64,000 nucleotides of DNA from Octopus bimaculoides (GCF_001194135.2 NC_068994.1:48235005-48299004), one strand, 5' to 3'; positions 32,463 through 61,688 are shown, counted from the first letter of the stretch. A program made the numbers and translations. The notes: generated by a model not told the origin, from the sequence alone.

Positions 32463-32496
<34 letters not shown>

Positions 32497-32908
32497 ATAC
32501 ACACACATACATATACATACACACACATACTTACATATACATACATATAGATACATATACATATATATATATATATATATATATTCATCATCATCATCAT
32601 CGTTTAACGTCCGCTTTCCATGCTAGCATGGGTTGGACGATTTGACTGAGGACTGGTGAAACCGGATGGCAACACCAGGCTCCAATCTAATATATATATA
32701 GATATACATATAGATATACATACTTACATATGCATACATATATAGTCAATCCAAACATGAACAAGCAAGAAAAAACAACAACGCGAGGACGTGGAATAAG
32801 TACAGTGTTATTGGACGCTCAGGAAAGGAATATACATACATCTACATACATAAACATACACATACATATATACATGAGAGAGGTTGAGCTTGAAATATAT
32901 TATATATA
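32228..32908. repeat. cryptic (TA/CA)-rich compound microsatellite interrupted by a minus-strand SINE-C tail (32586-32688)
   Basis: Long atatacac/atacatat variants running into the N-gap at 32909-33021. Confidence 0.85.
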
Positions 32909-33097
32909 NNNNNNNNNNNNNNNNNNNNNNNNNNNNNNNNNNNNNNNNNNNNNNNNNNNNNNNNNNNNNNNNNNNNNNNNNNNNNNNNNNNNNNNNNNNN
33001 NNNNNNNNNNNNNNNNNNNNNTATATATATATATATATATATATATTATATTATAGATAATTATACATGTATTAGGGTAAGGCCCTAAGTGCAGCTA

Positions 33098-33331
33098 TCA
33101 TGACTGTATCGTGTTAGCTGGACGTTTGTCTGTGAAGAAGCTATGCAGAACTATGATCTGGCCAATTCCAACAACAATCACTGCCACTGTCTCACATATT
33201 GACCAAAAAAATACTCTCTCATTCAGGAACTCAGCAAAAGCTCGCCCACTGGACTCCCGCAGCTTGAAGTGAGTCTGATAGTCAGCAATGGTGTTCAGCT
33301 GTGCATGTGTATTCACTGAAGTCTGCTCCAT
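33098..33331 (-). CDS. TMED7: p24-gamma terminal exon, distal copy (3B): coiled coil + TM + FF tail
   Basis: Acceptor tttttttcttcttctctatcttcAG directly before ATG, phase 0. Encodes MEQTSVNTHAQLNTIADYQTHFKLRESSGRAFAEFLNERVFFWSICETVAVIVVGIGQIIVLHSFFTDKRPANTIQS, stop TGA followed by TAG. The reading frame is intact. Confidence 0.9.
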   Translation of the reverse strand: MEQTSVNTHAQLNTIADYQTHFKLRESSGRAFAEFLNERVFFWSICETVAVIVVGIGQIIVLHSFFTDKRPANTIQS

Positions 33332-36300
33332 CTGAAGATAGAGAAGAAGAAAAAAACGAAAATTATATTTTAGTCTTCAATAAAACAAGTGTTAATGGCA
33401 TTATTTCAAAGTGTTTAGAAGACACTTAAAATCAGATTTAAAAATGTATATACAAAACTGTGAGTGCAAATGTCTCAATGTGTGTATGTATGTGTGTGTG
33501 TGTGTGTCACTTAGGTAAAGTGATACTAATTATTTGGCATTAGTAGTAAACCTATATTAGCTTCAGAATAAAGTGTTGGTTGAGTACAAAGTGTAATATG
33601 ACAAAGGAACAGGAAATTATGCAATGAATTTCATCAACTTACAACTGTTCTCTGCTAGAAGATGCAGTGCACTCACAAATGAGTTATTTGGGAAGGCATT
33701 TACTAGCATTTCATTTTAGAAGCTCTGAGGAAGCTATAAGTTAGTGCACATGCATTCAGCGATGCATCTTGTAGCAGAAACAGCTTTAGGCTAATGAAGT
33801 TCATTGCCTAAATTCTTGTTTTGTCATTTAATTTCATATACAATTAGCCGAAAGTGATGAAGACCATTAGAGTGACTTTTGCCATTTATCAAACCAGAGC
33901 TCCCTTATTGCATGCCACTTACCAAACTGTGGCTACCTCATTGTCTCATGGCAGTACTATAACCTTTAATAAGCGTCATGCACAAAACTCACAAATCCTT
34001 TCTCACTTTCTGCCAAGTAAAAAGATTGACACACATACTCAGTTTACTGAGTTCTGTTTCTGCTGTTCTACCACTCAATATAAGAACATTCTTAAATCAA
34101 AAATGAAGGAGACCAGAAATTCAAAGAGTTATATTTTACAGATTCAATGTTTTAGTAAAGACAATCTGTTAGTTGACATGCAATTATATCATGTCACTAG
34201 CTATTCAACCTACAAGAAATAGCAACCGATGTTAATTTCCTTTCCTTTTCAGATGGCAGGACATGATTTTGAAGGAGATTTGGCTGTTATTTCTAATAGG
34301 TCTAGTGACTGCATAGAGACTCCCTCCCAATCATAACACTTTAAAACACTGTTTTGTTATCTTAAAAATACTGGTTGAACAGTTTTTTTTTTGTTTGTTT
34401 TTTTTTGTTACAGTGTACAAAGTTTATAAACACATGGCAAGAAGTCAGACAAATTTAGCAGAGAATTTCATTCAAATTTCTCCAGAATGCAACCCAAAAT
34501 CTCAATTTCAGTCATATGATCTCCATTTTAAATTTTGTAGAGGGAAATTTTGCTGCTTCATCGATCTTGCATATCATAGTACAGAATTTAAAGTTAATAA
34601 GTTTACTAGAGACTTAGTCACTATATGCAGCAAGTCAAGCAACTACATAACAACTGAAAAGAAACTGATGTTACACTTGGACAAGTCCACCTTGCATGCT
34701 TCTCCTTTGCTATAGTCATTCATACCAGCAAGCTAACAAGGGAGATTATGTAGTTACTTGACATGCTAGAAATAACAGCCGAATTTCTTCCAATCAAACC
34801 ATTTCAAAAAAAGTAGTCACTAACCAATATAGTCCTAGATATACAAAAAAGATTGGCTGATCATAGCTGGAACGCCTTTGGTCATAGGTCTGCTCAACTA
34901 GGGCTGACTCAGGGTTAAACATTAATAGCAGTTATTCAAGACTGGACAACAGAAGGAATGCAATACACTCCGACTCATAAACTGCATTCTACACAACAAA
35001 ATGACTGCATGTTGTATATAATATGGATGCCCTCAACCAGATACAAGTACCATAGGCTATTCCTAGTTATTTGAACAAGTACCTAGGTACCATAAACCTG
35101 CTTGAGCAAGGCTGACCTGCATTTCATAGCAACAACTAGAGAAGCTCCTTCACTGATTCATGTGATCCTCCATTTAGTCCCTTTTGATACCAAACTACCA
35201 GAGACTGGCTTTGGTTCTATGATACAATCTTCCTATTTTAAAGCGATTTCAGTTAAAACCTCCCATCAAAATTTCGTGTTGATTTTATGTTCCAAACATC
35301 AGCTTAATAACGACAAAGTTATTTTACTAAATACTCCATTATTTTCAAAATCAATTGAAACTAATGCAGTGCATTTCAACAGAAATATAATAACAAGAGG
35401 GTTACATATACTAAAGAGTTTGATGGTGGAGAAGATTTGGTGGTAACATTGAGCAGGCTGATTTCACAGAAGCTCTCTTGCTGGCTTATGTAAGATCACC
35501 TATTTTAAAGACAGTATTGTGTTTAAGGAAAAATTTGGCTGAGACACTGAGCAAGTCAAACTACAACATAGCTCCCTTGTCTGGTTTTTCTTTTATTTTT
35601 ACTTATTTAGACTGTGGGCACCACCTCAAAGAATTTTAGTTGAACAAATCAATGCCAGTACTAATTTTGTTAAGCCTCGTAGTTATTCTATTAGTCTCTA
35701 GGCTTAACAAAATAAGTTTATTGACCCTTCTGATACTTGAAGTTGTCTTCAATCTTATAATACAAAATTGTCTGAATTAAAATCATTTCCATTTAAAATA
35801 GAATCTCCCATTGTTATATAAAGTTATGTTCCAAACACCACTTTAATAATGAAAATATTATTTTATCATACCAAAGCCTTTCAAATTCTTGATTATATTC
35901 AAAATTAATTTAAACAATTAAGCACAGTAATTTAGTAAAAAATAAAGTCATGAAAAAACTTCAAAGAATTTCTGAAGTGGTATTTTGTTGGCATTAGAAA
36001 GGGCATCCAGCCATAGAAACCAAGTCAAAACAGACTGGAGCCTGGTGCAACTCTACAGCTTGCCTGTCCCAGTGAAACTGTCTGACCCATGCCAGCATGG
36101 AAAATGGATGCCAAATGATGATGATGCATTTGAATAAATATTTTGTATCTGTTTAATTAAATAAATACAATCTTTTAGACAATTTTATCATTAACGTTTC
36201 ATTCTAAAATAAATTTAAATAAATACCACTGAAAATAAGATAAGCAAGCAAATAGGGGTAAGCAGAGTTTTTTAATGCTTTTTTTTTTTTTTTCGTTAGA

Positions 36301-36543
36301 AAGCAAGCTGAAACAATTAGAATATATTAAAAGCAGAAAATAAGAGTCATGCTTGATTTTGTTGCTCAATAATCAACTTTTCTTTCTGATACTAATGCAT
36401 AATTCATCCACAGCAGAGGAATAAAAAAAAAAAATGATGTTAAAGCCAATCTCTGAAAATTTTGAACTCATTACAGAAAAGTATGATACTAAATGCTATA
36501 ATCTATTTAATCTAATATTCTACTGGTTCAGTCATGTACACCT

Positions 36544-36763
36544 TTAATCCTTTCGATACCAACCTGGCTGAAACCGCCTCTGTAGTACAAATGTCTTGTT
36601 TTCATAAGTTCTGAATAAAAACCTTCCACCAAACCTTAGTTGCAATTTATGTTCCTAACACCAGCTTAATGATAACTATGTTATTTTACTAAATTCTTTG
36701 TTATATTTAAAATTAATTGAAATACGGAGCATCTCAAAATAAATATGGTAACAAAAGGGTTAA
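36544..36763. mobile_element. piggyBac-like MITE with TTAA TSD
   Basis: TTAA|tcctttcgatacc ... ggtaacaaaaggg|TTAA. More degenerate copies of the same family lie at about 35179-35404 and 35760-35920. Confidence 0.7.
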
Positions 36764-38061
36764 GTAACATTAACAATAATGTTGATTTCTCACATTTGAG
36801 ACAGGGCCATAAATTTCTAGAGAAAGACCTAGCTAACTGAATCAAATTTAGTACATATATGTCAACTGCAATGATGACTGGACAGTTTTCATTACCAGTT
36901 ATTGCAAGAAGAGTTCATCAGTTTGAGGAAAGGGAAAATGATAGGAGTGTTAAAATTTTTCATAAACATCTTACCAACAGCCCTTGTCCAGCATGACCCC
37001 AGTTCTTTACTATACCTTGTTAGTAGAATGAGTTACAAAAAGCATCACATATGAGAATAAAGAAATTTTAAAAAGACATTTATTGTTCCTACAGTTTAGC
37101 CCCTGGCCACATGGTAAGGCTTGGCCCAGCAGACCTATAATTAAAGGCATTCAAGCCATGTTTTACTCAGACATACTGTATCTAGAACTACATTATCCAA
37201 CATGGTCTTTCTTTATCCAAACAACAGGCTGTTGTTTGAGGAAGATTTGACTGCTATTTCTGGCAGGACAAGTAGCTACATAAGCACTCCTTTGTTGGCT
37301 CTTGAAAATTACACTATGAGTTATGTGTATGTATGTGTGGAGAGATCAGAGGTTTACTCTTCAGGTTTCAGTATTCTCTGGAAAGTGTAACATGGCTATT
37401 TTCCAAAAATCAATACAATTAACCACCTGCTGATAGATGCATTTTATCAAAGCACATAGAAACCTAAAGCAATATTGGTTTATCACATTTTGTTTTTTAT
37501 TCTTTGATTTTTCTATTTTCCATTTTATTGTTTTCTTCTTTAGTTCCAGATCAGTTCCAATAGAGAAGATAGGTTTTTTAAGAAAGCAATTCCAACTATG
37601 ACCAACCCCTCATCTTCTTTAAGATATGATACAATATGTCCTTTTCTGTTTGAAAATGTGATTTGCAGAATTAAGATTTGGTTGTTATGTCTAGTAGAGG
37701 TTCCATCTCAATTTTGCTTTCATATGTGAGATCCATTATTAGTTGTTTTTGGCCCTTTTATTTATTTATTTACAGATATACTTTCTTCCTTTTTCACAGT
37801 TGGAGAATATCTATCTTATCAGTCAAGAAAACCAAACCATTGTGACAAGTCCCCTTCCCAAATAAAATCTGAGATTAAAACTGCAAGCTAATGAAAAGAA
37901 GAAAATACAATCCCTACTGCTTTCAGAAGTGAACTGTAGCTCTCCACCAGTTAATGACAATATAGCGCTTAAGTGGTGTGCATGAGGTTAGTAACCTAAT
38001 TTAAAACAGCAATAACTGTTTTGTTACTATACTGATTTTGACTACTTTTGTTCTAATTACT

Positions 38062-38262
38062 CTCTTTTACTTGTTTCAGTCATTTGACTGTGGCCATGCT
38101 GGAGCACCACCTTTAGTTGAGCAAATCGACTCCAGGGCTTATTCTTTGTAAGCCTAGTACTTATTCTATCGCTCACTTTTGCCAAACTGCTAAGTTACGG
38201 GGACAAACACACCAGCATCGGTTGTCAAGCAATGTTGGGGGAACAAACACACACACAAACAT

Positions 38263-38304
<42 letters not shown>

Positions 38305-38453
38305 CGGGATTCTTTCAGTTTCCGTCTACCAAATCCACTCACAAGGCTTTGGTTAGCCCAAGGCTATACTAGAAGACACTTGCCCAAGGTGCCACACAGT
38401 GGAACTGAACCCGCAACCATGAGGTTGGTAAGCAAGTTACTTAGCACACAGCT
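38062..38453 (-). mobile_element. SINE family A, full length (minus)
   Basis: Complete reverse-complement copy with an internal (TA)n(CA)n tract. Confidence 0.85.
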
Positions 38454-39742
38454 ACTATTTTGGAAAGAATAAATTCATTAGAATAACTTTCATTACTAGG
38501 TGATTGGAATATAGATTAACATGAATTTAAAGTAAAATTTAGAATATATATTTACAGCTTTTAATTTAAATCCATTTTAAAAGAATTTGTATCACAGAAC
38601 AAAAGGGTTAAATTCAGTTCTCCACAGAAAAAAAAAAAAATCCCAAAGTACATGGAAATGTGAAAATTTTGAAAAATAGCCAAAGAATATTTATTCTTGT
38701 CAATATATCCAGTTTTTCAAGATTTTTATTAACTTACCCATTGTCTTTGGAATTAGACTTGAAGAACATTCTTACAAGAGTACAAAGTCACAAATTTGCT
38801 GAAGAGGCTATACTTAAATATGATAGTGACAGTCAGTATATGATACTTTCACCCATAACACCCATTTAAGCAATCCCTACTACCCTAGGCTGAGAGAGAA
38901 GGCCAGTTTCACTCACTTCGGAAACCACTGTTTTATAGCACTTTTCTCAGACACCACATGCCTAATTTATTACAGTTCAAATTTTACCTCAATGAATAAG
39001 TAAAATAAAAATTCATATTTTGATGATAAAAAAAAAAAAAAACACTAACACTTTCACCAAAAGAGAAACATTTCATTTATTGATTTCTGGACAAAAACAA
39101 TCAAAATATTTTTTAAATCTTGAAAAATTACAAAAAAAAAATTTCTTAGATTATAAAAAAAATGTTTACAAAATTTACAATGAATTCAAAGAAAATCTTA
39201 AAATATGAACAATGCACTAGTCTGCTTATTTAAAAAAAAAAATTACAGATTATTTCCAATTAAAATAATCAAACTAAATGGTAATTTCAGTACAAATTTT
39301 TTTTTTTTTAAAGATGTTCTAGTATGAAATATCAAATTNNNNNNNNNNNNNNNNNNNNNNNNNNNNNNNNNNNNNNNNNNNNNNNNNNNNNNNNNNNNNN
39401 NNNNNNNNNNNNNNNNNNNNNNNNNNNNNNNNNNNNNNNNNNNNNNNNNNNNNNNNNNNNNNNNNNNNNNNNNNNNNNNNNNNNNNNNNNNNNNNNNNNN
39501 NNNNNNNNNNNNNNNNNNNNNNNNNNNNNNNNNNNNNNNNNNNNNNNNNNNNNNNNNNNNNNNNNNNNNNNNNNNNNNNNNNNNNNNNNNNNNNNNNNNN
39601 NNNNNNNNNNNNNNNNNNNNNNNNNNNNNNNNNNNNNNNNNNNNNNNNNNNNNNNNNNNNNNNNNNNNNNNNNNNNNNNNNNNNNNNNNNNNNNNNNNNN
39701 NNNNNNNNNNNNNNNNNNNNNNNNNNNNNNNNNNNNNNNNNN

Positions 39743-39795
<53 letters not shown>

Positions 39796-42700
39796 AACTC
39801 ATCTTGTAATAAAACTGTTTACCCAGAGTAATTCAACTAAGGTTGACAAAGTCAGTCTGAAAATGGAACTCACAACAAACTCATTCACTGCTTTGTAATT
39901 CAGAGATCATAACACCCTAATTTAGTGGGAGAAGTGTTCATTAAAAATAATTAAAAATTATGAATCAAAGACACACACATACAAAGTAAATTGTTCAGTA
40001 AACTAACTCAACCTCAGTTTACGTCTAGTATTTACTGATTGAGTGTATGGAGAATTAAATTCAATGTAGACAGATAAAACTATATAACGAAAGGCATAGC
40101 TTGGCTCTACCAATTTACAGTAATTATGATAATTACAAGACTTATGAGAATGAAGATGATAAAGATTTCTTAGTCACAAAGCTAATTTTTGTTACAGAGT
40201 TGTTGATATAAATGCACCAACCCCACTATAACATTGGTGTAATTTTATTGGTCATCGCGGAAATAAAAGGTAAAAACAAACAAGACAAGACTTGGATTTA
40301 GTAACAAGCAGAATGACACGGAGAAATACTACACATATAATACTGTACATACTACCCAATAATTTCATATAAATAAAAGTAAGTCCAACTTTCACAATGG
40401 CGAAGGGATGTAGACAGTTGAATCAACTTTAATGTATTACTACTACAACTCTATTAAACTGAGAGAAAGAGAGAGAGACGAAAAATGAAGTAAACTACAG
40501 AGAAATTTAAATTCTGAAAGGAGAGAAATGAAACCAAATACACAAAGACAATGAATGTTGACACACCACTCTCACCTAATAATCATAAAACACTGGAACA
40601 TTTGAAACTATTATATTTCACTACTTCTCTCCAAACTATATATAGTTATATTACATGACTGAATTTATATCAGTAAATGCAGTCAGTTTTAATACTGAAA
40701 TAATAAAAAATGATTTGTAACATAGGCATAAGGCCACAAATATTTGGAAAGTATTGTCAATCCAACTGACTCAAATATCTATTTTATCGAGTCCAAAAGA
40801 TGAAAAGCTGAATCAACCTTAGTAGGGTTTGAACTCAGAATGTAAAGTGATATAACTATACACTGTAAAGCATTCTGTCCAGTGTTTTACTAATTCTGAC
40901 ACTCAACCATCAGCACACAGGCATTGATATACAGTGAGAAGAATATTTGATTTAAATTACCCCAGAACTTGATTCATATTATGAAATATTCATTGATTCT
41001 GAAAGTATGAAATGCACAGTCAACTCTAATGGGATTTGAACTCATTATATATGAGAATATGATGGGTTTTATATTGGCACAAGGACAAACTTATAGAGGA
41101 GGAGCATAGTTGACTCAATTGAACCAACTATAAAATACTGTTTCTTATATTATTGACTTTAGCAAAATAAACAATAAAATTGCTTTGACAAAATCTGAAT
41201 TCAAAGAGTAAAAGGAGGCAGCTAAATACAGTGAGGAATTTTGCCTGAAACTCTACCTTTCATTTTCACTCTTTCCAATTGCTGGTCTTTTGTAAATAAA
41301 AATAATTTCTGATGTAGACAGAAGGCCAGAAATTCTTTTTATGGACTCCAGAAGGATGAAGGCAAAGTTGACTTTAGCAGGATTTCAAATCAGAGTGTAA
41401 AAGAGACCATAACTAACTGCTGCAAGGTATTTTGTTTGATGTTCTGAAGATTTCTGCCAATTCACCAAATGATAATAAAAAATACTGGCTTTCATGCAAC
41501 ATCTCCAAAGACATAAAATACAAACAAACATACAACCACATTGTCCTACGTGATAGATACCAAATTGGTATTCTCCTTACAACCAGATAAGAAATCACCA
41601 AAAGCTTGGTGCATTATCATACATTTAACTGTAATGTTTTATGTAATGATGGTTATGATAACGGCATAAGACCATAAATTTTTTAAAAATGTATAGTCAA
41701 TTGACCTCAGTACATAACTGGTACTTATTTTACCAAGAAAGATGTGACTAATACAGAAACATGAACTCAAATATTGTAAAGCAATTAGAATCAACACCAT
41801 GTTAATAATGAAGATAATAACAAAAATTAAATCACTCCTTGTACTTGACTGATAAAAAGTACCAGTCAAGTACTAAGTCAATTTAATTAACCAACCACCT
41901 TCACACAAATTTCAGACCTTGTACCTAAGCTGGAAACATTTTTAATATCATTAACATTATTAAGCTGGCAGAATCGTTAGCACATTGGATGAAATGCATA
42001 GTGGTTCTTCATCTGAGTTTTAATTCCACTGAGGGTGATTTTGGTTTTCATTTTTGGTGGGGTTGATGAAATAAGTACCAGTTGAGTACTGGGACTGATC
42101 TCACCAAAATTGCTGGCCTTGAGCCAAAATTTGAAACCACTAATTATCATTAAAATTGCAAAAAAAAAAAAAGGTTAACTGCCAGGCTTAACAGCTTGCT
42201 GTATTTAATCACTTTCATTTATGTTTTGAGTTCTCAGGGATCAATAAGTACCAGTCATATACTGAAGTCAATTAAATCAACTATGTTACTCATCCAAAAT
42301 TTGTGGCCTTATTGTTATTTAACAATAATAAATTAAAATACTAATATTCTGAAAATATAAAAGATATAAAATGAAAGTATTTTTTGTTTTTTATTTTTTT
42401 GCAAGTGTGGCATATATTAATACTTCCTTTCAAATATAAAATCTGTTTTAAATAGTTTTATATTTAAACCAACATTAGCTTATAATGTGTAGAAGGGGAT
42501 TACTGAATTACAAAGAAGTATTACACTTAATGAATGAATGTTAGTGCATTTCTTCAGTAATTAGTGGTTAAATTAGGTTCCAAACAGTTTGACGTTAAAT
42601 TGCTTCACTTTCACAGACCATGAAAAACAAATCATTCAAAAGTTATCCTTTTTCCTATGGATATTACTATGAGATGCTGAGTAATAAGTAATAAATTAAT

Positions 42701-43997
42701 ATACTACTTATTAGTAGAAAATGATAACTTAAATGTAATCAGAGATGACAAATTCAATTATTTTCACTGTTTCAAATTTCAAAATGATAAAACTATCATA
42801 GCCATCTTTCTTAATTTGAATTATGAATGAAAAATTTTTTTAAATCAACTGAAAAACAAAAAAAAAACTTAAAAACTGAAATCAAAATTTCAACTCAAAT
42901 CAAAATTCACTTCTTTTTTTAATCAATAATTTTGTTTTTATGTTAAAATGAATTTCAATTTTAACATTTTAAAATATTTTTAATTCTATTTATTCTTCCC
43001 TTTCATTGGCTCATTTATTTAAACATTTTAGTATCATTCATTTGAAATTTTAAACTGAAAACAAAAAAAAAAAAAACTTTTTAAGACCCTAGGTATCAGT
43101 CTTGTTGAAAATCTTTTTTCTTTCTCTTATTCTACATAACCAATAATAGACAAATGCCAGAAGAGGTAAAAAGATAAGGAATTGGATGGCTGGATAGATT
43201 AGCATTGTTTCACACCCACTTTTAGATGAGCAGGCGACTTCTACAGTTCATTTTGCTATGAGGGGAAAAGCTGGGTAAGTTACATGGGTTTTCAAGGAAA
43301 TGTGTAAAATTGATAGGAGGATGAGCAGAAAGTGATTATATAACTATTTCATGTACTTCACAGAAATAGCAAAAAAAAAAAACAAAACAATAATAATACT
43401 GAACCTTTGAATACTTTTCTCATTAAAAGATTAACTTAAGCATGGGTTGAAAGTCTCGAAGAAAACTTAAAGGAATTTATTATCAAGCAGGGTATAGTAA
43501 GACAAAGGGAAAGATGGTGCTGCTGTGTTGGATAAGGGTTGTTAGTTTTCATGGGAGAGGTTATCAATTAGAATTCTAGACAATTTTAAATTACAGCAGT
43601 AACTGTAGTTTGCAAATATAAACAAAAGAAATTATTTGCAGCTACTGGTATAATCTATAAGCCAGTGTCTTTCAGTTTGTCTGACAACGAAATATATGGT
43701 TGGCTTCATTTATAATTAAAGTTTAAATCTTCTCACAAAAGAAAAAAAAAAAAAATCAATTACAATGTCTGTTTTCTGATTGGATAAAATGTCCAAATTT
43801 CTGGTTTTTATTAATTTTTTTTTTAATAATAAACCCCATCCCTACTTTATTATGTTTGTTGTTGTTTATATATATATATATAATTGATGGGGTTTTTTTC
43901 TCTTCTTTCCAGTTAAAAAAAAAGGTAAGGTTGTGAAATATACAATGATCCGCATCTCATAACCTCTTTGTAGTTTTTCTTGCTTTCTGCCCTTGCC

Positions 43998-44222
43998 TTA
44001 CGTCTTGACCTCTCTTTTATCAGTGAAGAAACTCTTCATGATGAACACCTGCCCAACTGTGATGATTAAGATGACTAAAGACTGACCCACGGACCAGTAC
44101 AGCACACGCTCATTGAGGTCTTCAGCAAATGATCTAGCCTGGCTCTCTCTAAGTCGGAAATGAGTTTGATAGTCCACTATGTGATTTAAATTTTCATGGT
44201 TAACCACAGCTGAGCTCTCCAT
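43998..44222 (-). CDS. TMED7: p24-gamma terminal exon, proximal copy (3A): coiled coil + TM + FF tail
   Basis: Acceptor tttgtctgttctcttgtAG directly before ATG, phase 0. Encodes [74 protein letters not shown], stop TAA. AATAAA hexamers lie downstream on - (43846-43851, 43807-43812). Confidence 0.93.
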
Positions 44223-44585
44223 CTACAAGAGAACAGACAAACACCATTTTCCAGTTGACCGCACACAAACAAAAGTTAAATAAAAATAAGCAATTGATAA
44301 ATAATTGAAATAAACAAAATCAAAATAAATATAACAAAATGTAGCAAGGAATATTATTGTTGTTGCTGTGTTGTTCATGACTAACATAAGCTAATTATTC
44401 TGTTGTGCACAAATAAAAGCCATGGCTACAGTGGATTTGTACAGAGATTATGAGCCAACCAGCCAACCATTTCTTCTTAAGAGCTAATGTCTTGCTATGA
44501 TTATATTTGGTGTTGATGTTCCACTACCTTAAAGCTAATTTAACAACCTTGAATTAGCTTCTTATTAGTACTATTAGTATTAAAT

Positions 44586-44810
44586 GTGGCAAGCAGGCAG
44601 AACTGTTGCCACACCAGACAAAATGCTTAGCTGCATTTTATCTGTCTTTGTTTTGAGTTCAAATTCCACCGAGGGCAACTTTGCCTTTCATCCTTTCAGT
44701 GTTGATAAAATAAGTACCAGTCAAGAACTGGGGGTCAATGTAATTGACTAGCCCCTACCTAACCAAAATTTCAGGCACTGTGCCTATAATAGAAAGGATT
44801 ATTATTATCA
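44586..44810 (+). mobile_element. SINE family B, full length with (ATT)n tail
   Basis: gcaggcagaactgttgcc...gagttcaaattccaccgagggcaactttgcctttcatcc...gtgcctataatagaaaggattattattat. The same tail occurs at about 1010-1066. Confidence 0.8.
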
Positions 44811-48789: not shown

Positions 48790-49280
48790 TCAAAAGGTTC
48801 CCTCTAAGTAGTTGATAGCTTTTTCTACTTAGGTGATCTAATTAGCAGTGGAGAAGAGTATTCTGAAAGCACAGCTGCCAGAGTAATAACAGTATGCAAA
48901 AAATTTGAGGAACTATTGACACTGCTAACAAAGGAATTCTCTCTCAGAGTGAAAGACAGATTGCATGATGCTTTTGTATGACATGCAATGTTGTATAGTA
49001 GCAAGACATGGGTATTAGATGCACAGAATATGCAAAGGCTGGAAAGAAATGAGGTGAGCATGCTCTGTTGGATGTGTCATATTAGTGTGCATAGACAGAG
49101 CACAAATGGGCTGAGAGAAAAAAAAAAAGATACAAGAGGAATCATAAGTAGCATGCAAAAGAGATGACCGAGTTGGTATAGACATGTGAGGCACCTTAAA
49201 CACGACTGTTGGGTAAAGCCTGACAATCTAAGTAGAAGGAACCTACAGGAGAGGAAAACCAAGGAAGACACAGGAAGAAA
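48790..49280 (+). mobile_element. degenerate RTE-clade LINE 3' fragment
   Basis: RLHDAFV*HAMLYSSKTW...RLERNEVSMLCWMC-type RTE C-terminal sequence. Confidence 0.65.
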
Positions 49281-49609
49281 TTAGGGAAAATGCAAAGTGT
49301 ATTGGTTATTTAGTGGGCTACAAATGGCAGATAGCCCAGATTACACTTTGTAGTATGCAACAAACATTAACTATCTCATTTCTTTTTCAAATGTATCAAC
49401 AGCATCAACATGGCAAATTCCAATTTGACACAAAAAATAAAAAGGCACACTGTGCATGTGGCTCTAGCAATTCAGAGATCACCAGCTTCTTGAATGTAGT
49501 GTTCAAGAAAAAACTAGAAGTCTCAAAGTAAGGGACTTGGCATCAATGGCTAAGATCTATTATAAAAATGAGAGCACCAGCAGACCAATGTGAATTATTA
49601 CCAAGAAGC

Positions 49610-50560
49610 TTAAAAGATATGTAGTGCAAAACACTAACCACTTGTCTATCCCTAGTTTCCACATTAACCACCAGATAAGGGATCAGGGGACCCTGTCAAA
49701 AGCTCTCTCCATGTCAACGAAAGCCAAGTACAGAGGTTTATCTTTGGCTAGGAATTTCTCCTACAGCTGTCTTACCAAAAACAGCATCAGTGGTGCTTCT
49801 CCTTGGCACAAACCCAAACTGCATCTCATCTAAACTAACTCTCTCCCTAATTAGTTGGGCTATGACCCTCTCCATGACTTTCATCACCTGATCCAACAAT
49901 TTGTTACCTCTGTAATTATTCCTATCTAAGGTATCACCTTTACCTTTGTAGCAGTTGACTATGGTGCTGCTACCCCAGTCATTGGGTATGATTCCCTCAT
50001 GAACCACCTGATTTACAATACGGGTGACTAGACCATAACCAACACCACCAGATATTTTAAGCATCTCAGCAGTGATTCCTGATGAGCTGGGGGCTTTCCC
50101 TGTCTTCACATCCTTAATTGCTTTATCTACCAAGGTACTGTCAATTTGAATAGCTGGTTGACATTTGGCAGACTCCCTTTCTCTCATTCATTCTCTTCAT
50201 TTAGCAACCTTTCATAGTGATGTCTCCAAGTCTCTCTCTCCTTGCAGCCTCATTAAATGCAAGTGAGCCATCATCCATGCGGACACATTTCTCTCCTGTG
50301 ACATCACTATTCTCTCTCACACACTGTCTTGCAATACAAAACACTTCAAGTCTCTGGTCCTCACAATGCAGAACATTGGCAGATTTTTTTCTTATCTGCT
50401 TCCCCTCTGGCTAAGTAAACCTGTCTCCTAGCTTCCCTTCTGGCAATCTGATAGTTCCCTGCTAACACCGCTCTTCCAGTCCTTCCATGCCTGTTTCTTT
50501 TCCCTAATGGCCCTGTCAACTACATCGTTCCACCACCACGTTACCCAGTGAGAGAAATAA
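49610..50560 (-). mobile_element. RTE-clade LINE reverse-transcriptase N-terminal fragment
   Basis: ORF 49738-50187 reads ...KTGKAPSSSGITAEMLK...IPNDW...YKGKGDTLDRNNYRG..LL....KVMERV...QFGFVPRRSTTDA. A WWWN motif lies near 50530. Confidence 0.88.
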
Positions 50561-51889
50561 ACAAAAATTATTCACGCTTGTGTGTATATTTGAAATAAAA
50601 ACAGATGTCACACCTAAAAGCACTAATCATTCACACGAACAAATACACTTGAAACACGCCTAAATATGTTACTGTATGCTTATATACCCGTGTATTATTG
50701 ACATAAATATCAATAGAACAGGTAGAATAGAAAATAAAATAACTGGATGAGAATACTAGATGAAATTTAGAAATTGTTTAGTTGATGAAATAATGAGAAG
50801 GCTGCTAGAGATACAAATAATCTATAGATTAAGACTATAGGGAGAACAGGTGGTAGATTAAATAGATACTTGAGATTAAAATGGAAGAAAAGCCAATAGT
50901 AACAAACTAACAAGCTTTCAGAAATAAAAAGGCTTGTAGCAACAGCTGGATTTCTTTCTAATTGAACATGGTAGAACCATTTAAATAATGCAAATTTCTA
51001 GTTCGTTAAATATGTATATAGACGATGGGGGGTGGGTAATAAAAGGTACTGAACAATCCAATAATTTTTTAATCCCTTTTAAAAAAATACCATTAACCAA
51101 ATTAACTTCCCAGAAACAAAAAAAAATGCTGTACTGACTTTAACTATAGAAGATTATTATTAAAATTTATTGATACTCAAAATGCTTAAAACTAATGAGC
51201 TGAATAAATAACTAAGAGGGCAGTAAGAAAAAAAAAACATGATATTTCATATAGCTTGAAAATACTGAATTTTCATCATTCTTTCTACTATAGATGCAAG
51301 GCCTGAAAAATTTCAAGGAAGACACTAGTCGATTACATTGACCCCAGCGCTCCACTTGGTATTTATTTTATCCACCCTGATAGGATGAATGGCAAAAATC
51401 AACCTCGACAGAATTTGAATTGACTGTAAAGTCAGAAGAAATGCCACTGAGCAGTTTGTTTGATGCAGAAATTATTTTGCCAGCTCAACAGCTTCACCAT
51501 TCCTGTAATACCATAAAACTTATATTTTACCACAGACAACTGTACGGTCACATGAATTCAATAATTGAATGAAGCCAGGCCAGCTCCTGTCAAACCATCC
51601 AACCCATGCCAGCATGGAAAACAGACATTAAATGATGAATGAATGATTGCTTAGAGGAAAATTTCAATAAACTACAAATTCATGTACAGGATTCAGTACA
51701 TGTCACATCATCTTATCCCACTTCATACCAGTGGCTCCTTTAAGATATTTCTTTGCTCCTTTTAATTATATAACATGAACCACATGCATACACATTCATT
51801 TGCTTGGAAGAAGTCACCATTGCCATTTATTACACATACCACATACTTTATCATAGTTGCTATTCAATTTCATTGCTTCCCTGATAGGC

Positions 51890-52040
51890 ACAGACATGGC
51901 TTTGTGATGAAGAACTTTGCTTCCCAACTACATAGTTTCAGGTTCAGTCCCACTGCATGACATTTTGGGCTATCTTTTACTATAGACCCAGAGCAATCAA
52001 AGTTGTGCAAGTAGATTTGATAGATGCTGTAGGAAGCCTG

Positions 52041-52102
<62 letters not shown>
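51890..52102 (+). mobile_element. SINE family A (5' half, ending in (TG)n at a gap)
   Basis: Degenerate head and core, then (TG)n running into the N-gap at 52103-52399. Confidence 0.7.
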
Positions 52103-54527
52103 NNNNNNNNNNNNNNNNNNNNNNNNNNNNNNNNNNNNNNNNNNNNNNNNNNNNNNNNNNNNNNNNNNNNNNNNNNNNNNNNNNNNNNNNNNNNNNNNNN
52201 NNNNNNNNNNNNNNNNNNNNNNNNNNNNNNNNNNNNNNNNNNNNNNNNNNNNNNNNNNNNNNNNNNNNNNNNNNNNNNNNNNNNNNNNNNNNNNNNNNNN
52301 NNNNNNNNNNNNNNNNNNNNNNNNNNNNNNNNNNNNNNNNNNNNNNNNNNNNNNNNNNNNNNNNNNNNNNNNNNNNNNNNNNNNNNNNNNNNNNNNNNNG
52401 TTCTCTGTCAGTTCTGAAATGCCGTTATTATTTATTTATTTACATATTCATATATTTTTTATTTCTGCCACTGGAAAAAAATAACTTCCAAAACAACATT
52501 TGTTTTAATACTATTTTAAGACCAAAACTCCTGTCAAACAATATTCACAAGAAACAAAAACATGTGAGTATGTGTACCTAAAAATTGAGCATATATTTTT
52601 CACATGAACATTTGAGCAATAACTGCTGGTCAAATACATGTACACCATACGAAAAAGTTGTCTAAATTACTTTTATAATTCTCAACATGTATTTTGATAG
52701 AACAGATGATTCAAATTTTGTTTCTTTTTTTTTTTTTTTAATTAAAATCTCAAATTTATAAAACAGATGCTTGCATAAAACCAAAAGTAGAGAAACAAGA
52801 AGTCAAATCAAGCAAAGAAGATTTTGATTCATGAAACTTGAATACCAGTTTATATGAAAAGAAGTAACTCAATTTTTCATAGATAAATGTATTTCAAAAT
52901 ATAGTACATGGAAAGTACTGGGAGGCTTAAGAGCTTATTAAGTAATTATATTCTAGCTTATTAAGGAATATATATTCTACTTTACTGATATGGTCAACTG
53001 GTCTAGTTAGTATTTGCAAAGTCTTGATAGTCTGACATTAATTGCAGCTAAACAAAGATTGGTGAAGGAAATTCATAGATATTATTGCCAAGGTTGTGAT
53101 ACAAGCAACTTCAAAGACAGGTATCAGTGATACATCAATGCTAAGAGTATTTCTGAAAGTTGAATCAGGAGGAAAGTTAACACTAATTAACTTAGCAGGG
53201 TTTCTAAGACTTGTGGAGGGAAAGGGAAGAGAAACCACATCTAATCAGGTACTGTCCAACAAACAAGCTTCTCCACAGGTTGGATTGACCAGGAGCATTG
53301 GTAGGTGAAACTTGCCTAAGCTGCCATGTGGTCGCATCAAAGCTGGAACCACATAATTGCAAAGCAAGTTTCTTAATAACACAGCCATGCCTGAGCCTGC
53401 ATTACCAGAAGGCTACAAATTTTGTAGGTGGATACATAAACCCTAGGAAGGCAAAGTCAACCTCTGTAGGAGTTGTACTTGGAAGCAAGACATCACAGAG
53501 CATTTAGTCTATTGTTTGAATATTTGTCACTCACCACCCTTATCAGTGCAAACTGTATTAATTCACTCAATATAAATCGAAGTGGGGGGGAGTCTATAAA
53601 ATAGAAAAACAAAACAAATATTTCAACACTAAAAGCAGGAGATATTTTACTCAAACTAGAAAATCCTCTCATATTTCTTTTAAAATAAACTTTCAACACC
53701 TGTAAACAATCTATACTCTTCTTTTTTAAAACTCCATATGGTGTTGTGTCAACGAAATGTCAAAGAGACTAAGCCAATGCACACAAACTGATTGCTCTAA
53801 CCATTTGCATGTACAGGTTGGAGGTAGATTTTTATTTCTTTCTAAATATTTAACTTATTGAAAGAAATGGGATTGTACACGTTGTTTGACAAAAATAATC
53901 AATAAAGACACTATCACTCAATGTTCGGAAAACATTTACATTAAATATTTACTTTTGTTCAGCAGCAACAACAAAAAAAAAAATGTTAATTACTATGCAC
54001 CACCAGGTGTCATAGTTTATAGTTAGATTAGTCAAAACCCTCTCTTGATGTTTTAATGCATTTCTGATCAAGATATTATTTACATCACTACCATTTTACA
54101 TTACCTCTATTAATGATAATGGGTGGAGGCTAGCAAAGTAGCAGTGAAAGGGGCATGTAGAAGACTAGCAGCTTTTTCTAATTAAAGATTCATCATCAAC
54201 TAATGCTACGGAAATGCATGGAGCACTGATGCTAAATACATGTATCATTTATATAACAATCATAAAAATTTTAAACAATACAACATGGATTAAGAATAAT
54301 TATGTAGGTTCCATTGGAGCAGCATTTCAGCATGGAAATATATTCCAAATGGAATGTAAATTGCTCCGGCAAACTTGCTTGAGGCACAGTCTTTATGACC
54401 AAGTTAACTGTAGAAGTTACAAATCTCAAATTAATTGAAGCTACTCTACTGCATAAACTCAAAATGCAACAATGAACTTTTACTAGGACAACAACAACAA
54501 TATGCTTAATAAATATATATAAGAATC

Positions 54528-54561
<34 letters not shown>

Positions 54562-56351
54562 ATCAGGCACTATGGTTCTATTACAGGGCCTTCAGCAACT
54601 TGGAATGAGGATTGAACATACTAGTTTCATCTTTATAATCCACACTATGTCAGTATTCAAGCTTTTAATGCTTGGGAATTAGCCTTGTTTTATTATTTTA
54701 TTATGTAAATGATATTGAGCCACTCATCACAAACTGGTTTACATTTTTAACAAGTAGTCCTATGCAACTTGCTTTCAGATGTTTGATAAATAAAGGTAAC
54801 TAATCCCTGATGAGTCTTAAAATATAAAAAAAAACATCCAACAATCTTTGCCCTAAGCTGCCAAAAGTACTGTAGTTTAATCATAAGGCCTAGCTTCATA
54901 GAATGTCTTTAAAATTATGACTGTATATGTATTCATATATATCAATCACAATAAATCAATATTTTTAAGTAGTTTACAATTAGATAATTAGATAAAAAGT
55001 AACAGCTAGCAAAGTCCTACTCACAAAGTAGCCATAATTTGTATCCAATAAAATGATATTGTGCTATACATATTTGAATCAGTGTGCTTTGGTGCAGATG
55101 GGTCCAGCATGGAAGTTTAATTTAATGCTGTAAGTAGCAAGCAAGGACAATGTATTACTAGCAAGTGATTTGTCAACTTAGAGTGATGCATACTCACCAA
55201 CACATTACATTTACTGACCAACAAAGGTGCTGCTTTTTATTATTTTCTGCCTCTTCTAACCATGACTACAATCACTTCTCCTCTTGAAGGTGGCAAGCTA
55301 CATATCTCCTACCTCGGTCTACTGAATGCACTTGTCCCATTCAAACTCTGTACTAAACATTTTGCAGAGTCAATTCTCAAAACTAGAACTCTCCTTGCTC
55401 GTGTTATTTTGCTAGTGGTATATCGCCAACATACTAGAAGCAGAAGTCTGAAAATTTCCATAAGATGCTCTTTTCAGGACACTTGAAGTGGATGCATTCT
55501 TCTTTGAGATAGAGAAAAGTCCAGAGTCTTCCCAATAGAACAGACAGATGTGAAAAGTAAACTCCTCATATAAAATATAAATAGTGGATTTTAAATGAAT
55601 GTCTTGGAACTGGTAAACTAATTCTGGTGACCACACATTTTACTTGAACAGGAGTTCCACCCATGTATGTGCACTGAATGAGGCAATACTTTAGGAGTTC
55701 CAGTAGTATCTTATTTAAACCCTGTGAGAATATCTTCTACATATCTAACAATCAGACATAGTTGGGTGTGATATAAAGGAAATTAGGCTGATATTTCTAA
55801 AGATCCATGCCGAGTCATATTGAATAACTTATTCCTAGATACACTATCTGAAAAAAGACTGGATGGTCACGGCTGGAATTCTTTTAATTAGAGCTGTCTG
55901 GGATTAAAGAAACAACAAAAGTTTCTCAAGCCATTATTTTTATTGACAAGTGGCTCCAACAGTACTTTTAGCTCAGTCCTATTTATACACCTTGTCACTA
56001 CATCAAACAGTCACTGTACCAAATCTTTAAGAAAGACTTTCACTCTAATCAACTATTCGATTACTTTCATTCTATTGAGCCATAAGAGAAACCACATAAA
56101 CAGTTTCTATAGTATTTGCTCTACAGAATCATAGTTTCCAAAGTTCTATTTTGAACCAACAATTCATTAGAATTTCATTCTTTCTCTTTTGTTTATCTTT
56201 AACTGTAATCATCAACGTTGGATAGATCTTTAACACTGTCTCATTACTTGTTGCATTCCAGCATCCCAAAATCAAACCTTACTACTTACTTTCTCATGGG
56301 CTTCTTGGCATTTCACTTATCATCCTTATCTTTTATATATACTTTTATATA

Positions 56352-56785
56352 TAGGTGTAGGAGTGGCTGTGTGGTAAGTAGCTTGCTTACGAACCACATG
56401 GTTCCGGGTTCAGTCCCACTGCATGGCACCTTGGGCAAGTGTCTTCTACTGTAGCCTCGGGCCAACCAAAGCCTTGTGAGTGGAGTTGGTAGACGGAAAC
56501 TGAAAGAAGCTAGTCATATATGTGTGTGTGTTTCCCCAACATCGCTTGACAACCAATGCTGGTGTGTTTATGTCCCCGTAACTTAGCAGTTCAGCAAAAG
56601 AGACCGATGGAATAAGTACTAGGCTTACAAAGAATAAGTCCTGGGGGTCGATTTGNNNNNNNNNNAAGAGACCGATGGAATAAGTACTAGGCTTACAAAG
56701 AATAAGTCCTGGGGGTCGATTTGCTTGGCTAAAGGCAGTGCTCCAGCATGGCCACAGTCAAATGACTGAAACAAGTAAAAGAGTA
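56352..56785 (+). mobile_element. SINE family A, full length; a ~58-bp internal segment is duplicated across a 10-N gap
   Basis: Complete copy. The segment aagagaccgatggaataag...gggtcgatttg appears on both sides of N 56656-56665. Confidence 0.85.
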
Positions 56786-59700
56786 CCTAAATCTCATCTT
56801 TCACCTAATGATAGCTAAAGTAGTTTACCACAAATTACTCAAACTTTTGGGAAAATAATTTTTGTTTCAATGATCTGGAGTGCAGTTTTATAAGAAAAAA
56901 AATAAGATATCTGATGACATTGATAGTACTATTTGAGTTATTATTTTTTTTGACTCTAATAAAGTTGAACCTGAAAAGATTTGAACTCAGAATAGTAGAG
57001 TAACAAACTTTCATGAAAGCTGTAAAGTATGTAAAGTACTATGAACTGTATCATAACAATGCATATATATATAAGAATAAAAAAATTATTAATCAAAAGA
57101 AGATAATGCTTATGTAAATTGTGCTTATGACAAAAATACATATTTAAAAACAAAAATTAGAAAAGTAAAATATGGGTATAAACCAAGTGTTTGTCTTTAA
57201 AACCTCAAAAAATAATTTACACAATTTAATTGTTAACTCTCAGTAAAACTCATTTATTTAAAAATAATTAAATTGGATAAGTGAATGAAAGTGCGTTGAT
57301 AAATAATTTGAAGGTAGTGAGTTCCAATCTGACTTCTGAAGTTCATAATCTTTAAGACAACGAATATTAGTTACTAATAAAATAACCTATTGCACTATAA
57401 AGATCTCACTGAAATAATCAAGTATTGTTTCTGATTTGTGTCAATATTCATAAGTAGTTCACTCAAGAGCTTAAAAATCTAGCACAGTAGCTGCAGACCA
57501 CTACTACAAAGCAAGCCTGTATGCATTCGTGTTTAACTGAAAGAAAATAGTCTACGTCTCCACTTCATGGTTGTCTGCTTAGTTTACTGTAGCAAAAGTA
57601 AAAATGAAATTTTAAAAAATATCTGTGTTTTTAAATGTAGGACGACTCCACTCAAGCATGAATAAATAATGTACGTGATTCTTACTTTAACTTATATTTT
57701 TAATATATGTACAATTATATTTTAAAATCTGTTTTTTTTTTTTTTAACTATTTTAAGCTCATTATTCCATATTAGTATAGATTTGATCATTCTATAAATT
57801 CAAGTTCCAGAACGTGATTTACTGGAAAAGCCTTTTGTATATTTTCTCCAGGTGGTTGGCTGTCTCTCTAAACAGTAAAGTTACACTTTTTCTTAACTAA
57901 TGGTTGCTCAAGTAATTGCTTAAGCAAACCTATGATCAAAAATATTCTAGCCATTACTACCCAAAGTTTTTTTTGTCTTTTCAGGCAGTATGCAATTCAG
58001 GACTACATTAATTTATTTGAAACTACACAATCTAATATGATCTTTTTCCTCACAATTTAGGAAATCTTTTGGGGACAATTAGCAGAAGGAACATACAATA
58101 TAATATCCATAAAGTTTAAACACAAACAATCATAGCCACTGGTTGGTTCACTAGATCAGTGCAAACTTGATCACTCCTTGAATAACAAGTCTTTCAGTCA
58201 AAGACTGATAACATGTCAACAGCAAAATTTGAATACTTTATATTCCCATTAATTATATTTTCATTTCCCCAGGAAAATGTCATGCAACTCAAGACTGATA
58301 CTAATTTACACATATTGGTGAACATATGTTCTTTATGTGCATTTACACCAGGTTAAAAGTATATATAAGCATGCACGTAAACATGTATAGACACACGTTT
58401 ATATTTGCCAATGTAACTATGTAATTATAATAATTATTCTACTTCTACTGAAATAATTATTGCATTGTGTATATCATGTCATAAGAATTTAATGGATATG
58501 TATTGTTACTTTTCTATTTTTATAGTTATTATTGTTTCTGCAAATTGACTCAGTCTTCTCTTCATTGTAAACAATATCAAACAGAAACTGATCTGAGTAA
58601 ACACCCAGTTATGTGTAACTATGGTATGTAGAATATATATCATCATCATTTTTGTGCTTGTTCTTTCATACTCATAAGGGTTGGGTGGAAGTTTTTGATA
58701 TAGTGAAGCTTATAAAATTTACATTTTTTTTTTTTAAATTTTATTTTGCTGATCACGTTTTCAGACAAGTTTCAGCAAGAAATATACACTAAATAGCAAC
58801 AAATATTCAACCAATGAGAAAGCTTGTATGTAGTTGCTCAACCTGCTAGAATAGACAAATCACTAAAATCACACGCAACTAGTTTAAAATAAAAAAGTTA
58901 TTTAAAGACAAGAAAGGCATGTTGGAAAATGTAGTTGGAGATAACTGTGTTTGAAAAGAGTTACAAATGGAATGTTCTTGATCATAGGTCTGCTGAATCA
59001 GAGATGATTTAAGCTAATTAACAGATATGTGTAACCATAAAAAAAATAAAATAAGAACAGTAAAAGATAAATAATGACTCATAAGTACAGGGAGAAATGA
59101 AAGGGGGAGTTGTGATGATTACTCTTTTTCCAAGAGCATAAATAACTAAAATGGAAAAGATTCCAATTGAGAAGTAAAATCAGAGTAAAATTAATAAATT
59201 TAGACATAACAGAAATTTTTTTAATATATTTTCTAATTACATTATAATGAATTACGTTAGACATTGTGTCTAATACCTGTAAAAGTCCCTTCTCAAATTG
59301 CTGAACCAAATGGGGAGTGTTTGATTTCTCAATATGCTAGAAATAGCAGCTAAATTTCCTTCAAATTACATCCAACCATGCAACATTTTAAGCTAAACTA
59401 TAATCATACAGCTTCATCCAGTTATTGTTAATCCTAGGAAAGATAGAGACAACTGGACATTTCTTAACTCACTAGGATAATCCAACAGCAATTTAATAGT
59501 TTTCATCTTGGTAGTTGAGTAGAAACAACCATGAGATTGACGGTTGTGCAAGGTTTTATAACAGGAAAGGAATGTTATAAGAGCAACTGGAACAAAAACA
59601 GTGCAGGCCCATAGAGATTGAAACTTTATATCTACTACATTTGATAGTCACATAAGTTCAAGTCCCACCAGTGGACCTGTTGCTCTTTATATATCAAACA

Positions 59701-60039
59701 GTTATAATATCTAATAACATTTACATTAAAATTTCAAGACGAGGTAAACCTGGTCCAAAAGCACCACAGAGACTTTTCAATGTAAAATCAATTTTGCTTA
59801 AATGTTGTAAAGAAGGAAGAGATTTGGGAGCTAAATTTAGCAGGTTAAATGGCTAAACAGAATCCTTCTTGCAGGATTTTACATAGTCACTCAAATTCAT
59901 CAAACAACCAGGATTAAGTACCAGATCAGATGGGTAATGTTAGCAGTTTTAGACCAGCATCCCATGAAGAGTAGTATTAATCTCTAACCTGCTTCTCAAC
60001 ATAGAAACGAAGATAAGCAGTGGCCATTTAGTACACAGA

Positions 60040-60905
60040 CAAGGTGGTATCAAAAAGTCCCAGGACTAGTTATGTTTAATAAAAAATAACTTATTTTACC
60101 TAAGTCTTATCATCTCCTTCAAGATAGTCACCTTGCACAGCAGTACACCAGTCCCAGCATTCCTGCCACTTTTGGAATTTGGCCTGAAATTTGTTTTCTG
60201 TAAGTGAGTTGAGGACCTTCTGCACTGGATTTCAACAACAGTGTTAGAACAGCAACTTTGGACTGCATTTTCATTTGAGGAAAAAACATGGAAGTCTGCA
60301 GGTGCTAAATCTTGGTGAACAGGGCAGGTACAGAAGCGATACCATGTTGTTTTTGGCAAGAAACTCACGGGGGAGGAGAGCTCAGTGACAGAGTGCATTG
60401 TCGTCATGAAGAATCCAGTTCTTCGTGTTCCACAGATCCGGTTGGTTTCACTGAATGTCCTCCCTCAAACACTTCAAAACATCACAGTAGAACTCTTGAT
60501 TGAAGGTCTGGCCCTACAGGATGAATTCTCAATGCACAATACCACATTTCTGGGGATGATGCTTATGGCAGATCTTTCAAGGATGTTCTACTTTTGAAGT
60601 GCCTTTGCCACTTGAGAAACATTGCATACAACCCATTGCCTTGTTGCCGTAAGCTTGCCGAAGCATGCTCAATGTCTCTGTAGCAGACTTCCGAAGTTTA
60701 ATGCAAAATTTAACATTAGCTCTTTGTTCCTGTCCATGACAAAATTACAGACTACAGTATGTGATTGCAAAAACACAAATTTCACAACTAGCGAAGTAAA
60801 CACAGCGATATCACTGCTAGCTCTCACTGCAGACGCAACCAAGTGCTGTCATCTGTTGGCACACTACAGAACTAGGCTGGGAACTTTTTTTGATAGCACC
60901 TCATA
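60040..60905 (-). mobile_element. internally deleted mariner element with both TIRs
   Basis: Left caaggtggtatcaaaaagtcccaggactagtt is roughly the reverse complement of right aactaggctgggaactttttttgatagcacctca|TA. The minus strand encodes HQDLAPADFHVF (mariner YSPDLAPxDF motif). Confidence 0.82.
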
Positions 60906-61439
60906 AATTTACAAGGTACTCAACAAATTTTAATCTGGGTCTAAAAGAATGGGTGTATAATCCTCAGTGAAAATGATATATAGATAAAAACATTTCACAG
61001 AAGTAAAGCTAAGTCCTTCTGCAGGCTTATTGCTCTTTCGATCTTAAACAGTGAAACAGTTACAGACAAACCTTGTTCCTAGCATTTTATTCTTGAAATT
61101 ATACTCTGCAATAGTTACTGTCAATTTTATTAGCTGGCATAAAATTAATTCCTCCCACTCACAAAAACAATAAAAGTAAAAAGTATCCAATATGAAAGTA
61201 TATGCAATGAGATATATTACTGGTATTAAATGACAATCAAGAGTGCAGGAAAAAAATAAGCATGCGACAGTGTTAAAACGTAGACAAGTAAATGAAGAGA
61301 AGTTAAATGTTGAAGTGTCAATGAACCGGTGACACTCCAACAGAATAAAGCAAGCAACACATAATACGAGACAGGTTTCCTGTTTCAATGACTGAAACCT
61401 ATAATGCGATTAATAGTTGTAAAGGTATAATATACTCAC

Positions 61440-61688
61440 CAAAGTCAGTGCCGTGGCATGTGAGTCAATTTCAGCAGTCAGAGGAGGCTTGTCGCCTACC
61501 TGGAAGTCAAAGTAGACAACCTTGTGGGAGAATGTGGAGAACTCATTACTAAAGCAGAATTTATACACGCCAGTCTGGTCAGCTGTCCACGTGAAGGTAT
61601 CATACTGTTTCTTAGTGTCTTTGTATAATATCTGACCACTTGGTGCTGAAAGTTCCATATCAACGTCATAACTACCACCAGTTATTAC
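61440..61688 (-). CDS. TMED7: p24-gamma / TMED7-TMED3-like cargo receptor, GOLD-domain exon (internal exon, phase 0/0)
   Basis: Acceptor ttgcAG (61690-61689) and donor GTGAGT (from 61439). The 83 codons [10 protein letters not shown]...KKQYDTF...[29 protein letters not shown]...ATALTL closely match recalled TMED7/TMED3 exon 2. The signal-peptide exon was not found in the window. Confidence 0.95.

Follow-up and report, generated by a model that had tools for sequence, protein, structure and literature searches.

Proteins of the p24 family act as hetero-oligomers, and gamma is the most diversified of their subfamilies. Here we describe a stretch of 64,000 nt from Octopus bimaculoides (referred to as the window), which contains all but the first coding exon of a p24-gamma gene of the TMED7/TMED3 type, its terminal exon being present in two homologous copies. 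In p24 proteins a luminal GOLD domain is followed by a coiled coil, a transmembrane (TM) helix, which contacts lipids, and a short tail whose FF and basic motifs bind COP coats (PMC7045115). As in the octopus gene, splicing alters what comes after the GOLD domain in two described cases. In human TAG, the GOLD domain is joined by splicing to the TIR domain of TRAM (PMC9755862), so that the p24 C-terminus is replaced by an unrelated domain of the neighbouring gene. In Tmed2, a 21-nt muscle exon, a cassette micro-exon, adds seven residues inside the coiled coil (PMC8925968). Unlike the octopus gene, neither case involves duplicated homologous exons. Vertebrates likewise possess two closely related gamma subunits, TMED7 (gamma3) and TMED3 (gamma4). 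However, these are encoded by separate genes and differ in both the GOLD domain and the C-terminal part, and the exon duplication of molluscs took place independently of them and later.

Tandem exon duplication giving rise to alternative exons is a well-established class, which the octopus gene resembles: the duplicated exon is retained in tandem, each transcript uses one of the copies, purifying selection acts on both and a single module is exchanged. Classical mutually exclusive exons are internal and share their downstream exons. This description was rejected for the octopus gene, as each copy closes with a stop codon, the region downstream is free of p24 exons and the 3' untranslated regions (3'UTRs) of the transcript contigs described below differ. 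Each copy is terminal with its own stop and 3'UTR, which argues for alternative last-exon use, where the choice couples splicing to polyadenylation. The nearest relatives of the locus are the TMED7/TMED3-like isoform pairs X1 and X2 of other molluscs, which are automated annotations. They represent the same gene and the same event; the window holds the O. bimaculoides instance, with nothing different in kind.

Exon organisation and products of the p24-gamma locus

The window is 100% identical, gaps included, to chromosome CM046614.1 of assembly GCA_001194135.2. Coordinates given here are positions in the window, and all parts of the gene lie on the minus strand. Exon 2 (61440-61688), common to both isoforms, comprises 83 codons encoding most of the GOLD domain and ending in HATALTL. 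It begins and ends in phase 0, with ttgcag before it and the 5' splice site TTG/GTGAGT at its downstream end. Its translation corresponds to residues 61-143 of the UniProt entries A0A0L8GJP4 and A0A0L8GJP0 (100% identity). Exon 1, encoding the signal peptide and the start of the GOLD domain, is located approximately 1.0-1.2 kb past the high end of the window. Downstream of exon 2 follow two terminal exons, each encoding a coiled-coil stalk, TM helix and tail. The proximal, conservative copy, 3A (43998-44222; 74 codons and TAA), lies ~17.2 kb from exon 2, and the distal, divergent copy, 3B (33098-33331; 77 codons and TGA), ~28.1 kb. Exon 3B reads MEQTSVNTHAQLNTIADYQTHFKLRE...SFFTDKRPANTIQS before its stop, SFFTDKRPANTIQS being the tail. 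Both acceptors consist of a pyrimidine tract and AG with ATGGAG ('ME') immediately after; the tract is moderate for 3A (0.64) and strong for 3B (0.92). The two homologous exons are in tandem on one strand, downstream of a shared exon; both are phase-compatible and possess an acceptor and a stop. Aligned without gaps, 38 of 74 residues are identical, with 58% identity at the nucleotide level. The coordinates, frames and splice signals of exons 2, 3A and 3B, as well as the 38/74 identity, had been given in a first-pass annotation of the window, and all were reproduced here.

Both isoforms, of 217 aa (3A) and 220 aa (3B), are recognised by the PF01105 (EMP24_GP25L) profile, with 168.6 and 162 bits, respectively (gathering score 25.9). 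The terminal exons alone also exceed this cut-off (60.5 bits for 3A and 54.2 bits for 3B), aligning to profile positions ~117-181. As read from the sequences, the products appear to possess the complete p24 architecture, with the signal peptide contributed by exon 1 outside the window. The best named matches are all TMED7 or TMED3(-like), with 62-64% identity to vertebrate TMED7 over 100% of the query; the assignment to the TMED7/TMED3 type of p24-gamma is based on these best matches and identities. Among the PDB matches no TMED7 or TMED3 chain was found, the best being TMED2, then TMED5. The entries 21gl and 21gm represent a complex of TMED2, TMED5, TMED9 and TMED10, in which the gamma chain is near full length and includes the region aligned to the terminal exon.

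The luminal GOLD head is common to both isoforms; in the coiled-coil stalk and TM helix roughly half of the residues differ, and the extreme C-terminus differs too. In both terminal exons a hydrophobic stretch (FWSICETVAVIVVGIGQIIVL in 3B) is followed by SFFTDKR. The invariant Q of the TM helix and the FF-plus-basic COP-binding core SFFTDK[RK] (SFFTDKR in octopus) are retained in either copy; hence, judging from these motifs, both should be competent p24 subunits. Taken as a whole, the gene is very probably the O. bimaculoides orthologue of TMED7/TMED3, with three coding exons, the last of which was duplicated in tandem long ago.

No other p24 exon was detected in the window by tblastn with full-length octopus and vertebrate proteins, the next best match having E=0.14. 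The matches at 27442-27540, 17893-18006, 24705-24794 and 38083-38148 were considered as extra or degraded p24 exons and dismissed as chance, as they have E values of at least 0.14 and no conserved motifs.

The assembly contains gaps at 39339-39742, 52103-52399 and 56656-56665. All are intronic and, consequently, no reading frame crosses a gap. The first of these, a run of 404 N whose length, as for all gaps, is an estimate, separates 3A from 3B and could conceal exons 1 and 2 of a second, tandem p24-gamma gene that 3B would terminate. However, in the collinear, gap-free locus of O. sinensis this gap corresponds to only ~290 bp and the 297-N gap at 52103-52399 to ~260 bp, and neither counterpart contains p24-like sequence. 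In O. sinensis and O. vulgaris, whose loci are gap-free, tblastn searches with full proteins revealed one exon 1, one exon 2, 3A and 3B, in this order, and no further p24 exon, including any GOLD exon, between 3A and 3B. Since these loci are collinear and gap-free and contain no extra GOLD exon, a paralogue hidden in the gap is excluded. Furthermore, cephalopod mRNAs for the two tails have the same 5'UTR and, but for one single-nucleotide difference, the same exons 1 and 2, and RefSeq models the two tails as isoforms of one gene. For O. sinensis and O. vulgaris the existence of two paralogues is thereby refuted, and we regard it as exceedingly improbable for the O. bimaculoides locus. It had been noted before that no second GOLD exon was found between the terminal exons, and separate exons there had been named as what would make 3B the end of a tandem paralogue; the observation held, since neither the window, including the interval from 33331 to 43998, nor the congener loci yielded a separate upstream exon set for the second copy. 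These data point to a single gene.

The intron between exon 2 and exon 3A (44223-61439; 17,217 nt) is collinear with the O. sinensis locus and without p24 matches. It harbors the gaps 52103-52399 and 56656-56665 and a weak reverse-transcriptase remnant. Around the 10-N gap, approximately 440 bp (56342-56784) have no counterpart in O. sinensis, the flanking alignments abutting at 12046-12048 of the O. sinensis locus (L012). This segment was either inserted in O. bimaculoides or results from a scaffolding join.

Transcripts of the two endings and selection on the terminal exons

Both predicted products are found in sequence databases. The protein composed with 3B is identical (100%) to A0A0L8GJP4 and that composed with 3A to A0A0L8GJP0 / XP_014780391.1, all from O. 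bimaculoides. In O. sinensis they are consecutive RefSeq isoforms of one gene, XP_029644669 (X1, 3B) and XP_029644670 (X2, 3A). Transcripts were found as two Logan contigs of ~1 kb (L007 and L008; runs SRR24189495 and SRR24189501) from a cephalopod outside Octopus, each carrying a complete, intron-free coding sequence. Except for one single-nucleotide polymorphism, the contigs agree throughout 146 nt of 5'UTR and the coding sequence up to the exon 2/3 junction. Past this junction one has a 3A-type and the other a 3B-type ending, and their 3'UTRs differ; the 3B ending was seen in four independent sequencing runs. Hence, in this related cephalopod the same upstream exons are joined to either copy, and the contigs are direct transcript evidence for the event in cephalopods.

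Selection on the exons was assessed from the proportions of differing nonsynonymous (pN) and synonymous (pS) sites. Between 3A and 3B, synonymous sites are saturated (pS 0.83, pN 0.30). In comparison to the cephalopod outside Octopus, pN and pS were 0.117 and 0.44 for 3A, 0.147 and 0.90 for 3B, and 0.116 and 0.88 for exon 2. Between Octopus species the three exons are 98-99% identical, with 84-95% identity in the 200-nt flanks. Both terminal exons are thus under purifying selection. The saturated pS between the copies and the low pN relative to pS against the distant cephalopod bear out the first-pass view that both copies are old and maintained by selection.

Four kinds of evidence, the deposited products, the gap-free loci, the spliced contigs and purifying selection, argue for the reading put forward at the outset, that one locus makes two p24-gamma proteins by last-exon choice. 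We consider it highly probable that tandem exon duplication gave rise to genuine alternative last exons here. Several observations weigh against this reading. The current NCBI record for the assembly has the 3A product only, and the 3B product stems from an older submission, now in UniProt. Junction support in O. bimaculoides itself comes from deposited gene models only. The poly(A) site of 3B is hidden by an assembly gap and a microsatellite, and no test of a functional difference between the isoforms was found. Finally, between O. bimaculoides and O. sinensis/O. vulgaris, 3A differs by four nonsynonymous and no synonymous changes, although these counts are small; 3B differs by no nonsynonymous and two to three synonymous changes. 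The proximal copy may therefore be less constrained within Octopus, counts of this size being too small to test it.

The missing 3B product in the NCBI annotation and the substitution pattern of 3A are also what one would cite for the view that one copy is a decaying pseudo-exon or an annotation artefact and that only the other makes protein. Against this stand the reading frames, which are intact for both copies in three Octopus species and for 3B in Argonauta as well; frame-breaking changes were looked for in the 3B orthologues of these four and none were found. Moreover, in the deeper cephalopod comparison pN is far below pS for both copies, both are present in spliced mRNA contigs (3B in four independent runs), and both are more conserved than their intron flanks. 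A pseudo-exon is accordingly a very unlikely explanation, and we retain two functional last exons.

A third isoform annotated in O. vulgaris, CAI9732890.1 (168 aa), has exon 2 spliced to a short cryptic exon that lies between 3A and 3B, and terminates without a TM helix. The homologue of this cryptic exon lies at 41377-41450 (minus strand) in the window and at 34595-34669 of the O. sinensis locus. As a third alternative ending it was rejected: the window homologue requires a frameshift and, hence, is probably not a conserved coding exon.

Distribution among molluscs and origin of the duplication

Pairs of X1/X2 proteins that differ exactly at the 'ME' boundary were found in at least nine mollusc species. 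Pairs annotated by NCBI that are identical up to 'ME' and different after it are present in Gigantopelta, Haliotis (abalone), Mytilus (mussel), Mizuhopecten (scallop), Ruditapes (clam) and Sinanodonta; the oyster pair consists of one named protein and one transcript-derived protein. The isoforms are therefore already catalogued in RefSeq and UniProt, for this species and for many molluscs. The earlier note had left open whether the arrangement was reported in other invertebrates; it cannot count as unreported, and comparative and experimental follow-up is what is left, rather than discovery. No paper on the mollusc terminal-exon duplication was found in the literature searched on p24/TMED splicing, exon duplication and invertebrate phylogeny.

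The exon order was examined at two further loci. In Haliotis rufescens exons 1 and 2 are followed by copy A (19961-20188) and copy B (26022-26255), and in Mizuhopecten yessoensis by A (20315-20539) and B (26254-26487). Octopus, Haliotis and Mizuhopecten are alike in that the copy resembling the single exon of the outgroups is proximal and the divergent copy distal. One terminal exon, with nothing similar within 10 kb downstream, was found in the chiton Liolophura, in Lingula, in the annelid Owenia and in the heterobranch snail Biomphalaria. The single exon in chiton, brachiopod and annelid places the duplication inside Mollusca. Thus, 3A and 3B do not descend from a duplication before the protostome-deuterostome split such as would make them orthologous to the vertebrate TMED7 and TMED3, and the parallel drawn earlier with these two genes is an analogy only. 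The event is mollusc-specific, occurs in three conchiferan classes and is unrelated to the vertebrate gene split. In Biomphalaria glabrata (L014 11288-11413 and 12785-12994) the GOLD exon is split by an extra intron and followed by one terminal exon, which suggests that this lineage gained an intron and either lost the B exon or never gained it. A TMED7-like protein of Branchiostoma floridae is also annotated with isoforms ('isoform X2').

Whether the two-exon layout arose once, in a common conchiferan ancestor, or separately in cephalopods, gastropods and bivalves is a question on which the data pull in two directions. Between classes, the B copies share only 52-57% identity, no more than they share with A copies, and a neighbour-joining tree with bootstrap did not unite them. 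Under constrained parsimony a single duplication cost 358 steps, three duplications 361 and a separate event in cephalopods 359 (bootstrap P 0.16-0.41), differences which are not significant. The single exon of chiton and Biomphalaria likewise fits separate origins. On the other hand, each B is equidistant from the A copies of all classes rather than closest to the A of its own class, as expected if the duplication preceded class-specific changes. The three classes also have in common the exon order, with the conservative copy proximal and the divergent one distal, and B tails ending in Ser, where A copies and outgroups have Thr or short tails. Seventy aligned residues are too few for the neighbour-joining tree, the group identity matrix or constrained parsimony to separate one event from several. 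Two further searches were of no help in dating the duplication: exon 3B alone retrieved three fragments only, and a profile of 14 B-type exons retrieved mostly unnamed single-exon gene calls without taxonomy. On balance we lean towards a single origin; separate origins in the three classes are rather doubtful, yet far from negligible.

A broader proposal, which we advance tentatively and as somewhat less than an even prospect, is that the terminal exon was duplicated once in the conchiferan ancestor, before cephalopods, gastropods and bivalves split, and was kept as a regulated switch for two gamma subunits with one GOLD head and different stalk, TM helix and tail, acting in distinct p24 complexes or traffic. 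If true, molluscs would have achieved by splicing what vertebrates achieved by gene duplication in expanding gamma, and heterobranch gastropods would have undergone secondary loss. It appears that molluscs diversify gamma through exchange of the stalk/TM/tail module only. The alternative exon is exactly this module and the GOLD head is kept. The gene therefore offers a natural domain swap, in which the contribution of the C-terminal module to the assembly of complexes, contact with lipids and binding of COP coats can be told apart from that of the cargo-binding head. It is also a clean example, conserved over a long time, of an exon duplication taking the place of a gene duplication.

Possible mechanism, 3' ends and neighbouring sequences

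Exons 1 and 2, encoding signal peptide and GOLD domain, would be spliced either to the proximal exon 3A with its own stop, or past 3A to the distal exon 3B. In the latter case the intervening stretch (33332-43997) would be spliced out together with 3A; it includes the 3A 3'UTR, the gap 39339-39742 and the non-conserved cryptic exon homologue. The choice may be a competition, in which a proximal exon with a weaker acceptor and a poly(A) site is set against a stronger distal acceptor. Within p24 hetero-oligomers, the resulting isoforms might prefer different partners or be unequally stable; alternatively, they might cycle with different kinetics.

A candidate poly(A) signal of 3A, an AATAAA hexamer, is located at 43846-43851 on the gene's strand, 146 nt past the 3A stop. 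In O. sinensis and O. vulgaris the hexamer lies 131 nt past the stop, and thus at a similar distance in three Octopus species. A consensus match in AT-rich DNA is weak evidence; nevertheless, exon 3A probably has its own poly(A) site. Other poly(A) hexamers were discarded as evidence, being too common in AT-rich DNA, and only that of 3A recurs at a similar distance.

The first 76 nt of the 3B 3'UTR (33022-33097) enter a (TA)n microsatellite and then reach the gap 32909-33021. This gap begins 77 nt past the 3B stop, inside a (TA)n/(TATG)n microsatellite found in O. sinensis too. Owing to the proximity of the gap to the stop, the 3B 3'UTR and poly(A) site are unreadable in the window. Long (TA)n/(TATG)n/(TATGGA)n arrays directly follow the 3' end of 3B in both octopuses (window 32187-32626 and 33022-33060; O. 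sinensis locus 48050-48600), and these arrays probably caused the assembly gap. Beyond the gap, no sequence of the window could be aligned to the O. sinensis 3' flank.

The gene next upstream in O. bimaculoides, ~8 kb before exon 1 and outside the window (L015 1-1925), encodes ribosomal protein S3Ae and has the same orientation. Elsewhere the neighbours are pyruvate kinase (Haliotis) and MIB/HERC2 (Mizuhopecten), and those of Lingula are different again; hence synteny around the gene is not conserved. Two further open reading frames were noted in the window. One of 198 aa (9215-9811, plus strand) has no Pfam match. The other (49738-50187, minus strand), in the intron between exon 2 and 3A, gives a weak RVT_1 match under the cut-off (E=0.006) and is probably a decayed retroelement.

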